Source of the DNA: Klebsormidium nitens
Lineage: Eukaryota; Plantae; Klebsormidiophyceae
Length of the DNA stretch: 64,000 bases
Assembly (NCBI GenBank): GCA_000708835.1
Contig: DF237161.1
Coordinates: 23,880 to 87,879, forward strand
Direction: 5' to 3'
A program made the position numbers and the translations under genes. The notes under the pieces are model-generated. The model saw nothing but the letters and a program-made list of their open reading frames with translations, was not told where the DNA came from and ran no database searches. Of this stretch, positions 34,761-40,748 are shown piece by piece; the first letter of the stretch is position 1, and each line of letters starts with the position of its first letter.

Positions 34761-35359
34761 TGGAATTACCGATACTGGTACCTCTGATCGAGTCGGTGAC
34801 GGTACCTACGAATCAACCGACCGCGCACGGGAGGGAAAGTACGTGGTCATCTTCTTCGTTCTTCTCGTATTCATCCTGGAGCGCTTTGAGTCTTAACAAT
34901 TTGGACGGTGCTCGGGGACAATGACAAAACCGGAACATAACCCGGATTTGACGTGGTCTGCGCCGGTAGTCAATGCTCACGGATCACCCTCAACCCAAAT
35001 CAACCCTACCCCTTTCCCGGGCGCTTTCATTAGTCAAACCGGCTCTTGGTCAACATGTCGAAACTTCTTCTTTCTGGTCTACGGTCTACCTACCTGTGTT
35101 GTGACCAGGCTGGACCATGGCGAGCTCCATTGCCGGACGTACAGACGGGGATAGAATAGTTGGAGGGGATTGAATAGTCGCATGCCGCTTTCAGTCATAT
35201 GCAGTAGCTGCGTTTTTCGAGGCGCTGACGGCGTTGCGGCTCAATCAGGGGGGCTGCTGTCAGCTTTTTAGGATTCCGCCCCTTTTTAGGTTCTTGCAGT
35301 TGTGCGGGACCATTCATTGTGGGGAGCTAGACTTATCGTTTTAAGAGGGAGACCTTCTA

Positions 35360-38300
35360 ATGAGAGTGAGGGCAATGACGTGTTTACGGGGGCCATGGGT
35401 CTTGCTGTTTCTTTTCACAGGTGAGGTACTTGGCAACATTGCCGAAAAGTGAACGGTTGGTTCGTTCATTGTGGCTAAGAAGCGACAAGAATGTCTGGCA
35501 GCTGCGTAAGCCGGCAATAATGTTCAATAGCTGCAGAAGCTCGCAGAGTCTTTCATTGTGTGCGCCTCATGCGCTGGCAGTACACCTTGCTTGAAAAGCG
35601 CGAATCTCAGACTGGGGTGCCCCTGGTTGAGTTGCCGCATCTTTTCATTCAAGCATTTTGTTTGTACATGTTGTAGGTTGTCAGATAATTATAATGGGGA
35701 GCGCTGTTCTGCAGGTTTTCTTGTGACAGCTGCAGCACGCCCGTTGGGTCCTGGTCATTTTGGCCTGGGTAACGACGTCGGGCTAGATGTACCAGTGGAA
35801 AGGCATATTGTCGGGGCTGGGCTTCAGTCAAGGACGTTTTCTTTTCTGAAGGACATGGCAATGAATCTGGTGGGGAGGGGATGTGAAGGCATGAAAAAAG
35901 CAGGCGAAGCAGTCGAGTCACAGGAATCTTGGCTGGCAGCTTCTAACGAAGTGCTTTTGCTGCAAGCGAGGGGCGTGTCCGCAAGGAGCCTCCTACAGAA
36001 CGGTAAGGCTCATTCTTTTCATGGTCAAGACGGCACCTTTTGCATGGCAACAAGGCTGGCCTACCACTGCTGTCAGGCCGTATCCACCAGGCTCGTGTTT
36101 TACTTTTGTTGCTCGTTGCTTAAATGATCCAAACTTGCACCTTTTGGATGTTTCTTGTGTGTGTTGCCATGCACCTCATGTCCGGCAGTGTCTCCTTGTC
36201 TCAGTCAATATTGCTGCCCATTCTGGTTTGCAACCGACAGCTCACCAGCTACTACTTTGCCGTTGCAGGTGGGTTGTCTCAGCAGGGGCAACCTGCAAAT
36301 GGTGAGATTGCAACCCCTGCATATTGTCAGACGTGTCCGCCACTAAGAGCTTGCAAGCATCACAAAGTTTGGTTTTTTTGAAGATCAAACCATCTGCTGC
36401 GCTGCCCTTTCCTTGTGCATTTGCGATGAGCCATGCCATCGAGCTTGGACCTCTTGCTTATGCTTGGAGCTTCCTGTTTTGCCTTTTGCCTTTTTTTGGT
36501 TCTTTGATCCTCTGATTTGTGTGACTGCAAGATTATCAGCAGGTTTTGGTGTGCCTTCTAAGTGGTGTGGTGTGGGCGTTCTGAATGACAATCACTTTTT
36601 GCAGCTGTTGCCATATGTTTATAGTTAAGAAGCAGGACGTAGACCCGATAAATTAAACGAAGAAGAGTAGTACCTGGGGGTTAACAGGATCGGTGGATGG
36701 TGGTTTTAGCAGATGGTATTCCAGGAAGTTGCGGACATGTTGTTTCACTTGGGTTCGTGTTAGTGCTTTTCACGCCTTCCACATTCTCCACTTTGCTGCT
36801 GTCCCTCTGCACACACGGCCCCCTCACACTGTACGAGGGTGGTTTCTGTGCAGGCGGCCGGTATGTCACAGATAACATGCTTGGCGACTCGCTGCTGAGC
36901 ATCCTACTCGCCCTAGGCTTCTGCGTTGCCCTTTTTCTCGTGATGCTCGCACGGCGCTTCTGTATGATCCGCCGGCGGCGACATCGCCGCCTGCTGTTGG
37001 GGGATCCCCCTCCTCGAATCCAGGTCAGGGCGCTCTCCTAACTTGTCTTCTTTCCACATTTGCAGCATATCCAGGGTACTATCAGGGGAGCTTGTTGGTG
37101 TCCCCCTTCCTCTCCATAGTCATGGGCGCTGCCATCTGTGTGGGGCTGTGCGTCTTCCTCTCGGTGTGCCGTGTCGTCGTGCGCCACCGCTTTGCTCAGC
37201 CGCTCCTTTTTGAAGCAACGGCCAGACAAGTGAGCGGGGTAGCATTATGTGGGAAGAGCCTCATGCTCCACTGGTTTTAGTTGGAGTTGGTGGTAGAAGA
37301 GTCTTTGTTATCAGGCTCTGGAGAGAGTTGGTGTGGCAATTGAAATGTCTGTGAGTGGTTAAATAAATCTTTTTGGCCATCTTCACCATCATGGTTGAGT
37401 ACAAACGCACTGCGTAGATCTGCTCGTGATAGCTGCCTCTTTCGTGCTTTAGCTCGTTGCTTGAGCGTAGCCGCTTGTCCCGCCGGCCCAGCATTTACCT
37501 CAAAAGAACTTCAGAACTCTATTCAGGATTTACGAAGCGCACGCAGTTCCTGCTCCGGACAAGCTGTGCTGACCTCAACTTTCTTCTGTTTGCAGGAGGC
37601 CCCCTCGGCTGCCCTGCCCTACTCAATCCTGAAGGGGCTACCCATCGTGTCGTTTAAGAAGGAAGGCGAGAACCAGACCTTCAATCAAGGGAATGGAGAC
37701 AACCAGTAAGTGTTTCACCATGTCTTTGCATGTCAAAAGCTGTTGAGCTCCTTTGGTCAAGTCTCCAAGGGTTGCATCCTTGCACGCGGACTTGCTTCCC
37801 TTTCCATTGTGCCAGCAGTGCAGCCCTGTGTATCGGTCAACACTTGTTTTTTCAAGGGTTGCTGCCCGTCGTCAAGTCCTGTGTTATTCCAAGCTGGGTG
37901 GATATCTGCCTCAAAAACCGCCTGAGAGATGGAAGGTGCTCACAGCGATGATCTGTTCTTTGCAGGTGCCCCATCTGTCTGATCGAGTTTGAAGCAAAGG
38001 ACAGCCTTCGCAAGCTGCCAGAGTGCAGTCAGTGAGTAGCACCCTCTGTGAATTGCCCGAGTTTGGTGTCACCTTCTGGTTGGTGTTTGTTTGGGTTTTC
38101 CTTAATATGTTATTATCCAACCGTCGTGCCCCCTCTGATTGTTTAGAATCGTTTAGGAGTGAAGGCAGGCTTATATTGTGTGCACCTTTCGAGCTAGAAG
38201 TGTGCCAGGGCTTTTGCAGTTGACTGCGTGTCCACAGCTGCATAGCAAGTATTAGCAAAAGTACTTGGGAAGTGAGCGTTGTCTGATACCGTGTTCGAGG

Positions 38301-38644
38301 TCGTGAGCAAACAGTTCCTTTGCTGGAGTTTCGTAGTGGACGATTTCCAACGAACTCCTCTGTATCTTTCTTGCAGTTACTTCCATCAAGCCTGCGTTGA
38401 TGAGTGGTTCAAGAGAAACCACACGTGTCCCCTGTGTCGGACATCGCTACTTCCTTCAGAGCCGTCCAGTGCAGAAGCAACTCCACCAGACGCTGCTTCT
38501 TCACAGGCCCAAACAGAGAGTGCTGTTTCATCAAGGGAAGAAGTAGTGGTTCCTGTTGCAGCCTTGGAGCAAGAAGCGGGGCAAGTGGGTTCATGTCCTG
38601 CCCCACTAGAAAGGGAGGGCCCAGGGGCTCTAAGGGTGACATGA
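35360..38644 (+). CDS. ATL-like membrane RING-H2 E3 ubiquitin ligase with signal peptide; exons 35360-35420, 35715-36002, 36269-36301, [36854-37023 or 37066-37229], 37596-37705, 37966-38031, 38377-38644
   Basis: Signal peptide MRVRAMTCLRGPWVLLFLFTGFLVTAAA. Ectodomain ends in ARSLLQ, followed by a TM helix and basic residues. GLD-like segment LPYSILKGLPIVSF. RING-H2 CPICLIEFEAKDSLRKLPECSHYFHQACVDEWFKRNHTCPLC. All phases are consistent with one of the two TM exons. Confidence 0.88.
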
Positions 38645-40748
38645 TTGCCATGTCACCTGTGTAGCAGGTCGAAGGTGCGGAGTCAGCAAGGTTTGCCAAA
38701 GGGGGACGAACTTGTACAAAAACGTTGTTACATCAGGTGTCCTTTTTCCTTGTCTTTTCGTATTACTATAGATTGTATTTTAGGATTCGTTTGACATTCT
38801 GTACGGGGTGCCTTTGATTGAAAGAATGGGCACCAGGCTGGTTTAAGATCTGTGTCCTTGAAGTAAGAGCGTACGTTGTGTTTCTGATTTGTTTGCATGT
38901 GTTCCATGACTTATTCTCAATCTCTTATGGCCTTGAACCTGCCAATCGAGTTACGTGGATGTCTTGTACATACCTGTGGCTGCGTGGCTTGAACACTTTG
39001 CACTATTGCACACGGATCCTTGCATGATTAGATACTTACGTTGCCCCTTGTCCATATGTCACTGATAAAGGACGATTTTTCTGCATGTTTTTCTGCATGC
39101 ATAGCTGGGGCTGTATGTAACCAATGTTGCGGGGCCTAGTCTTTGCACCATGGCATGCAGCAGGCTGGCCCATGGCTCAACATTTTGGCCCGCTTGCAGT
39201 GACCGGGTCCTCCGGATCGCATGAGAGTTTAACGGTCGATCCGGACTTTGAGTCATCCATTTGAACCCCGCTTTCAGCTAGCATGACCTTGCGTCCATAT
39301 TTCTGCTTCTTGTCGTCACACATATGTGGAAATTTCATGATTGTCATAGTGCACCATGCCCTTTAACCTACTCATGCCAGCAGGTCGCTATTTCGTAATG
39401 ACGGACTAGATGGAACTTTTATAGCTGAGATTACTGACTTCTTCTTCAGAATGATATAGCTAGAGTCAGTCTTGTCATGCAGCACATGTGCTAGTATCTT
39501 GCGGACCGCTATTGGCATGAGAATGCTTCCAGCTAGCTCTGCGGCCTTTGTATAAGATATAATCGTCATGACCAATTTGTCTGCGCGCGCATGATCCCAT
39601 GCACCCAACCGTCAAACAGATGGGCCTGACCATCGGACCATGCAAATTCACCAACTCGACCATGAATATATGGACCATATAATTTGATTGACAAAGCTGT
39701 TGCTATACTGATGAAGCGACGCCTCATGTGCAGCACAAGCGCGTGACAGCACGCACATGCGGCCTGCATGATCGACCGGTCAGAGTTCCAACATGTCACA
39801 TTGGATTGGATATGTCAACACTTAGGATTGACAATTTTTATTAAAGCAAGCCTGTTTGTGGACTTTTTTCTGGCTGCAATAACAGTGTTTTGATGCATAT
39901 CGGAAAATTGGAAGTGCACGAGCTTCACGGGCTGTGACAAAAAGGCGCTCGGGTGAGCATGCGTGCACAGGTTCCCATTTTTGATATATACATTGGCAAC
40001 CGGCAGATGCAGGTGGCGGTTCTTGTGGGCCTAGCTAAGTAAGACAATTTGAAATCAGTCGACTTGAACCTGACAATTAACCTCCAGTATCTTCAAGAGC
40101 CTGCAATTTTGACCAATGTGCCCCAAATCAAGGCAACGTCTGGTGAGCTAAACTCGTTATCAACGACTCAGGTACACGTCATGGTGGCCGCAGCCCGATC
40201 CACCTTGTTCCAATAGCTCAACGACAAGCGTTAGCACTAGCTTACGGACAGCTTATTGCTTTTGCCCCCTTGCTCAACCCCAGGCTGAGGGTGCCGCCCG
40301 CGCAGACCCCAGCAATCTTGGCGTATGGCAAGCGTCCGTATCGGGGGTCGATATCTGGGCTGCGCCTCTGCTATCGACCCCGCTTCGCTTCGTGCACGCA
40401 AGGCTGCTCAGCGCATGATCTCGATCAGGGAACCATACTGTGAGGACCTCTTGTTCCGGTGCCCCCAGCTCTTGACTTGGCTTGGAGTCCCACCACTTCC
40501 AGACGGCCTAAAATATCTACAGCTGAATTCCCCCCAGCCGCCACGCTCTTACCGCGCTGCTTTTCCTTGCCCGCCGCCTTCCCAGGCTCTTCGCTCGTGC
40601 CCTGTTCTTTTACCCTCCCTCAACCTCAGTCCCCTTCCTCCACCGATCGGCCCCGTGTGATCACATCCCCCTGATCCCCCACCTTCTTGACGCCCACGTT
40701 AAACCCACGCCCGTTCCCCCCCGGGGTAGGGCGCTCCGCCCTGGGGGC

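Follow-up and report, generated by a model that had tools for sequence, protein, structure and literature searches.

Mutually exclusive exons, their enforcement by steric hindrance and exons that exchange one membrane anchor for another are known from animals. In the TPM1 gene, the branch site of the downstream member of the exon 2/3 pair lies too near the upstream donor for both exons to be spliced into one RNA (PMC2905242; PMC7969005), the site having been described as 'too close' to exon 2 (PMC2905242), and a distance of approximately 50 nucleotides (nt) between 5' splice site and branch point has been given as the steric threshold (PMC7969005). In Drosophila Dscam1, exons 17.1 and 17.2 each encode a transmembrane and juxtamembrane segment with the rest of the protein unchanged, and the choice between them sets the subcellular localisation (PMC7685093); steric hindrance together with RNA secondary structure has been reported for this pair (Yue et al., 2013, as cited in PMC7969005). 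In plants, internal mutually exclusive exons have rarely been reported (PMC3923563), and our literature search returned no paper on such exons in Klebsormidium. Here we describe a gene located in a 64,000-nt stretch of Klebsormidium nitens DNA (contig DF237161.1, positions 23,880 to 87,879; hereafter the window, within which all coordinates are given) whose product is predicted to be a membrane-anchored RING-H2 ubiquitin ligase of the ATL type, and in which two neighbouring exons, A and B, each encode a membrane anchor and are spliced in alternatively. We consider it highly probable that this is, as a whole, an either-or gene in which old twin anchor exons are kept apart by steric exclusion and chosen through competition between 3' splice sites.

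The gene consists of seven exons and six introns on the plus strand, extending from approximately 35360 to 38862, and its features are the following:

35360..35420, plus strand: coding part of exon 1, with the ATG at 35360 and a signal-peptide-like hydrophobic N-terminus; joint 35420-35715 in all four RNA runs
35715..36002, plus strand: exon 2, ectodomain; joints 35420-35715 and 36002-36269 in all four runs
36269..36301, plus strand: exon 3, 33 nt, the last base being the first of a split codon; its donor joins 36854 and 37066
36807..36853, plus strand: stem-loop at the end of intron 3, an inverted repeat over the 3' splice site of exon A
36854..37023, plus strand: exon A, alternative, minor form, 170 nt; joints 36301-36854 and 37023-37596 in runs X19, X17 and X16
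37024..37065, plus strand: spacer between A and B, 42 nt, carrying the predicted branch motif and the pyrimidine tract of exon B
37066..37229, plus strand: exon B, alternative, major form, 164 nt; joints 36301-37066 and 37229-37596 in all four runs
37596..37705, plus strand: exon 5, with the GLD-like KGLPIVSF between membrane and RING; acceptor for both A and B
37966..38031, plus strand: exon 6, first half of the RING-H2 domain; RNA joints; positions 3-22 of the zf-RING_2 profile
38377..38862, plus strand: exon 7, second half of the RING-H2 domain, C-terminal tail and 3' untranslated region; positions 25-44 of the zf-RING_2 profile, 27.5 bits

The RNA evidence comes from four public runs (X16, X17, X19 and X20) of four studies, the contigs of which were mapped on 35300-38900. 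These data are assembled contigs, from which rare variants are dropped and in which depths are coarse, and the isoform shares given here are approximate. The runs are RNA, because a poly(A) tail is found at 38862 and a fully spliced contig of 1174 nt was assembled, both in run X20, and joints with GT..AG ends are present at every predicted intron. Every mapped contig matches the window at 99% identity or more, and a diverged paralogue is therefore not their source.

Both exons are used. Exon 3 is joined to exon A in three studies, at contig depths of 15.8 (X19), 126.8 (X17) and 48.1 (X16), and exon A to exon 5 at depths of 19.3, 201.7 and 80.1 in the same runs. The joint of exon 3 to exon B occurs in four of the four runs (contig depths 38.5, 88.1, 498.4 and 205.9), as does that of exon B to exon 5 (38.5, 88.1, 505.2 and 218.8), one contig of form B being full-length. 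All four alternative joints have GT..AG ends. By contig depth, A accounts for roughly 20-30% in the three runs where it is found and B is the major form, being the only one assembled in run X20. Among the contigs of the four runs there was neither a joint of A to B (37023-37066), nor a joint of exon 3 to exon 5, nor any alternative in-frame joining of A to B, with the limit that rare forms may escape assembly. Mature RNAs hold A or B, never both and never neither.

An earlier note on this stretch, made from the letters alone, had read the two exons as mutually exclusive and proposed to count junctions 36301-36854, 37023-37596, 36301-37066 and 37229-37596. The first two were recovered in three runs and the last two in four, and the mutually exclusive reading is supported, both exons being spliced, no A-to-B joint being found and both exons being conserved as coding sequence in related loci. 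The note had also named what would speak against it, namely one exon never being spliced and being unconserved, or abundant reads joining A to B in frame; neither was found.

Low-depth unspliced contigs were also found in several runs, at approximately 3-20% of the exon depth. They span 35393-35741, 36273-36882 and 37201-37622 and cover introns 1 and 3 and the one that follows B, intron 1 being flanked by coding sequence, and may be precursor messenger RNA (pre-mRNA) or retained-intron forms.

At the sequence level the two exons look like twins. Exon A is preceded by the acceptor gtgcag and followed by the donor GTCAGG, and exon B stands between ttgcag and GTGAGC; both have lengths of 2 modulo 3, start in phase 1, end in phase 0 and are read from their third base. 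They are thus neighbours of similar length and matching frame, each with its own AG acceptor and GT donor, which are the marks of tandem duplication used to define mutually exclusive exon clusters in Kassiopeia (PMC3923563). The peptides of A and B are 28% identical, and their local alignment score of 42 compares with 22.6 +/- 4.6 for shuffled sequences; full shuffling matched it in 9 of 5000 cases, and shuffling with the hydrophobic block preserved did so in 133 of 5000. A profile-profile comparison (hhalign) gave E = 1.3e-3. Judged from these alignments, the resemblance is weak yet above chance.

The spacer (GTCAGG...TTGCAG) can be neither read through nor removed between A and B without cost to the frame. 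Read-through meets a TAA at 37039-37041. Joining A to B would give a RING-less product of 201 amino acids (aa), the stop of which lies 289 nt upstream of the last junction, and skipping both exons would give one of 147 aa, with the stop 117 nt upstream of that junction. When the DNA was read and the exons translated, the coordinates, lengths, phases and peptides of both exons, the 42-nt spacer and its TAA all proved exactly as the earlier note had them, and so did its claim that joining A to B shifts the RING domain out of frame, the open reading frame (ORF) of 201 aa holding no RING. The TAA itself sits inside the predicted branch motif of exon B, CTAAC (37038-37042), where a splice signal doubles as a stop codon.

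Relatives were collected by exon-level searches and one profile search, which yielded three genomic loci and several proteins; full-length comparisons used the relatives returned by the profile search. Word searches with single exons returned two genomic ORF fragments only, and no match with exon 7, and metagenome scans with a DNA pattern and a back-translated peptide found no relative. Locus L001 is collinear with the whole gene. In locus L003, exons A and B are found with a 43-nt spacer between them. Locus L002 is more distant and shares with the window no sequence outside the exon pair; it has full-length spliced products of the B type (P0005 and P0009), which are 56% identical to isoform B of the window. 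In addition to these, a protein from the Klebsormidium subtile transcriptome (P0008, 332 aa) is of the B type and 76% identical. A 122-aa ORF (P0003) is predicted at L003:42-412, running through exon A, spacer and exon B as a single frame because the 43-nt spacer is without a stop.

Comparison of the window with L001 gave DNA identities of 0.89 for exon A, 0.93 for exon B, 0.91 for exon 5 (97% for its peptide), 0.88 for exon 6 and 0.46-0.56 for the introns. Exon A is accordingly conserved on a par with the constitutive exons 5 and 6, and the introns are not alignable. The ratio of non-synonymous to synonymous substitution rates (dN/dS; Nei-Gojobori) is 0.37-0.39 for A and 0.03-0.21 for B, and synonymous changes are in significant excess in both exons, with p = 0.046 and 0.012 in A and values of about 1e-5 to 1e-4 in B. 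Among the four loci (the window included), peptide identity is 58-84% for A and 87-98% for B; A compared with B gives 22-32%, and the A peptides cluster together, as do the B peptides. Since identity is high within each type and only 22-32% between them, the duplication predates all four loci. By this comparison, exons A and B are old tandem duplicates, each of which has been retained as coding sequence, under stricter constraint in B.

The weaker constraint on A raises the question of whether B alone is functional, inclusion of A being tolerated splicing noise from a decaying duplicate. In keeping with that view, A is the minor form and is not seen in the X20 contigs, it evolves faster than B, its juxtamembrane tail differs in L002, and the full-length relatives in protein collections are all of the B type. 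Noise would sit poorly, however, with the recurrence of A at about the same share in three independent studies, with a frame, phase, splice sites and hydrophobic helix kept in four loci, with synonymous changes outnumbering non-synonymous ones in A, with conservation equal to that of constitutive exons while introns cannot be aligned, and with the dedicated, conserved RNA structure at the A 3' splice site described below. We regard pure noise as very unlikely.

How are the two exons kept apart? The predicted branch motif of exon B, CTAAC, places the branch A at 37041, which is 17 nt from the donor of exon A and 25 nt from exon B, in a spacer that appears unstructured (z about 0). The whole spacer, at 42 nt, and the predicted distance of 17 nt both fall below the steric threshold of approximately 50 nt, proposed as the limit for U1 and U2 to bind together (PMC7969005), and any position of the branch point within the spacer would lie under it. 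The spacer measures 41 nt in L001, 43 nt in L003 and, in L002, 42 nt with a GC donor or 38 nt with a GT donor. We infer that geometry would be the main enforcer, the branch site of exon B lying so near the A donor that the two could not be occupied together; after A has been selected, its donor would reach only exon 5. Incompatible frames and nonsense-mediated decay could act as a backstop, clearing any RNAs with both exons or with neither. Such a steric explanation is likely, and it fits a spacer of 41-43 nt in the four loci.

The arrangement resembles that of TPM1 in the short distance from upstream donor to downstream branch site, and also in that the downstream exon is the strong default through its branch point and pyrimidine tract (PMC2905242). 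In TPM1, however, the intron has a greater length and its branch point lies unusually far from the acceptor, whereas here the whole intron would be 42 nt; TPM1 is an animal cytoskeletal gene in which the default exon is repressed by PTB, whereas here a hairpin lies on the minor exon. Similarly to the Dscam1 pair, A and B each encode a transmembrane and juxtamembrane segment in an otherwise unchanged protein. Dscam1 differs in being an animal adhesion receptor with an intron of 252 base pairs between the exons, and an effect on localisation, established there, is a hypothesis here.

Several points weigh against the reading of the gene set out above. Contigs lose rare variants, so a low-level product with both A and B is possible. 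The branch point is a prediction from its motif; the steric limit in Klebsormidium may differ from the published one, and the host's minimal spliceable intron length is a related concern, the main text of the Klebsormidium genome paper giving no intron statistics. Exon A of L002 (L002:5763-5918) keeps its phase only with a GC donor (GCAAGT, 152 nt); use of the GT donor that follows 4 nt later (156 nt) would put A and B, when joined, in one frame. The spacer of L003 leaves the frame intact, and its retention would yield an in-frame protein with two membrane helices; policing by frame is not universal, and other splice products are conceivable in the relatives. The profile search of protein collections returned no A-type protein of other species, and because of this the use of A outside K. 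nitens is deduced from conservation, the B form being present in P0008 of K. subtile and in P0005 and P0009. Finally, the hairpin is drawn from four sequences and one compensatory pair.

The L002 and L003 products also bear on the suggestion that the spacer is a spliceable mini-intron and that RNAs with both exons or neither are made and then destroyed by nonsense-mediated decay. The stops of both products lie well upstream of the last junction, as decay would need, and contigs are blind to rare or unstable RNAs. Decay cannot, however, police L002 with its GT donor or L003 with its retained spacer, as no frameshift arises in their two-exon products, and spacer length is then the sole safeguard common to the four loci, an argument for geometry, in preference to decay, as the primary cause. 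Moreover, the spacer has been held at 41-43 nt in four loci, whereas the other introns of the gene measure 260-552 nt and vary in length between loci, and no A-to-B joint appeared in four runs in which pre-mRNA contigs at 5-10% of the depth were visible. The making and subsequent clearing of such RNAs is thus an unlikely primary cause, and steric exclusion is preferred.

The choice itself would be decided by 3' splice sites that compete with each other. Pyrimidines make up a fraction of 0.45 of the sequence preceding A and 0.80 of that preceding B. The acceptor region of A coincides with the stem-loop at 36807..36853, the outer stem of which (CUGCACA/UGUGCAG) includes the AG and the inner stem of which (CCCCCUC/GAGGG) surrounds the likely branch A, so that three elements of the exon A 3' splice site are paired in the hairpin, namely the AG, a short run of pyrimidines and the probable branch region. 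Its calculated free energy is -25.6 kcal/mol in the window, -29.1 in L001 and -31.2 in L002, with z of -2.8, -3.5 and -5.2, respectively. It is by far the most stable of seven acceptor regions, in the window and L001 alike, and the best conserved intron end (0.84 versus 0.52-0.76 for the others). The loop sequence differs in each locus and the stem persists, with one compensatory pair. Exon B, having a consensus branch motif, a good pyrimidine tract and no structure, would be the default, and A, with a poor tract locked in the conserved hairpin, would be used part of the time. The hairpin suggests, as a lead and not as proof, a choice in which B is the default and A is limited, possibly under regulation.

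A conserved RNA structure adjoining exon A also calls to mind the docking-site and selector pairings of insect Dscam, in which exclusivity would follow from competing long-range pairings and not from spacer length, and Dscam exon 17 is itself reported to combine steric hindrance with RNA structures (reference 139 in PMC7969005). The hairpin found here, however, is local and not one of a competing pair, no further inverted repeat of introns 3 and 5 is common to the window and L001, and the introns are otherwise unconserved, which leaves long-range pairing with hardly any probability. A pairing of the spacer with the donor of exon B (I13) was dismissed as chance, as it is not conserved in L001 or L002.

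Returning to local competition between the splice sites, it is conceivable, though on balance doubtful, that the hairpin acts as a switch which temperature, stress of the dehydration type or an RNA-binding protein could open and which would thereby set the ratio of A to B, and that the two anchors send the ligase to different membranes or lipid domains.

The isoforms with A and with B comprise 331 and 329 aa, respectively, and the RING is intact in both. Each has a signal-peptide-like N-terminus, an ectodomain of approximately 105 aa, one hydrophobic helix (from A or B), a basic stretch, KGLPIVSF and the RING-H2 domain. With helices called by hydropathy, the best 19-residue values are 2.93 for A and 2.53 for B, and basic residues follow in both. 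The helix of A is rich in Leu and Phe and that of B in Gly, Ala, Ser and Cys; the 15 residues past the helix are strongly basic in A (8 Arg) and mildly basic in B (3 Arg), and the stretch on the ectodomain side of the membrane is Tyr/Gly-rich in B and not in A. The two isoforms would have the ectodomain and the predicted catalytic RING in common and differ in anchor and juxtamembrane charge. The exchange of anchors probably changes the membrane to which the protein is sent, the lipids or partners that it contacts, or the rate at which it is turned over.

Assignment to the ATL type was made with the family model and criteria of PMC3161093. A regular expression for the canonical ATL spacing, C-x2-C-x15-C-x-H-x2-H-x2-C-x10-C-x2-C, matches residues 220-261 in isoform B and 222-263 in isoform A, and 22 of 42 RING residues agree with the ATL query model. 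Residues typical of the family are present: Leu follows ligand 2, R-x-LP precedes ligand 3, Phe stands before ligand 5, the pattern [IV]D-x-W (here VD-x-W) comes after ligand 6, and Pro follows ligand 7; the W is followed by F, not L. The Pfam zf-RING_2 profile matches the window in two halves (exons 6 and 7) and reaches 54-56 bits in the full-length relatives P0008 and P0005. KGLPIVSF of exon 5 stands at the expected place of the GLD motif and, as judged by eye from the residues, keeps Gly-Leu with Pro in place of Asp; approximately 18% of ATLs are without a GLD motif (PMC3161093). From these features, the product is predicted to be a single-pass membrane RING-H2 ubiquitin ligase of the ATL type. 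With the ATL family it has in common a transmembrane helix upstream of RING-H2, the canonical ligand spacing and the family residues (PMC3161093), and it differs in its approximate GLD, in the signal-peptide-like N-terminus and ectodomain of approximately 105 aa before the helix, and in its six introns. The ATL survey (PMC3161093) describes no alternative anchor exons, with the limit that no search was directed at alternative splicing in this family.

A streptophyte alga can, on this evidence, equip a single E3 ligase with either of two membrane anchors without duplicating the gene, in parallel to the transmembrane switch of insect Dscam. The evidence forms a chain from twin exons through junctions for both forms, the lack of a joint product and conservation to a simple geometric mechanism, and a 42-nt spacer with a 47-nt hairpin would make up a compact system for exon choice outside animals. 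Annotations with a single isoform would miss the second protein. In a survey of 65 species, exon skipping in Klebsormidium was linked to short introns, unlike in most eukaryotes (PMC6142364), and we infer that either-or exons with short spacers could be a cause of that link. On the doubtful view that the hairpin is a switch and the anchors lead to different membranes, such exons would be an old and widely used means of protein diversification in the algal relatives of land plants.

The remaining observations concern the two ends of the gene and its least conserved part. The stop codon of exon 7 lies at 38642-38644 and the poly(A) site near 38862, where run X20 has a loose poly(A) end. The reading frame from the ATG at 35360 is open, with an in-frame stop directly upstream, and the coding sequence was taken to start there because every run has the joint of exon 1 to exon 2 and the frame continues through it without a stop. 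An internal ATG at 35855 was considered as the start and rejected, as the frame is open into exon 1, in the window and in L001 alike. The two internal Met codons of exon 2 (35855-35863) are Val codons in L001 (966-977), and an N-terminus homologous to that of the window is also found in P0008 of K. subtile. ATL-type ligases usually begin with the anchor helix, and a signal-peptide-like start is unusual among them. The term 'ectodomain' used in the earlier note agrees with the start at 35360 and with this N-terminus. No Pfam profile matches the ectodomain itself (exons 2 and 3; 35717-36301), which is less conserved than any other coding part of the gene, with a DNA identity of 0.62 to L001, and is barely alignable to the L002-type protein, a divergence that contrasts with the near-invariant exon B.

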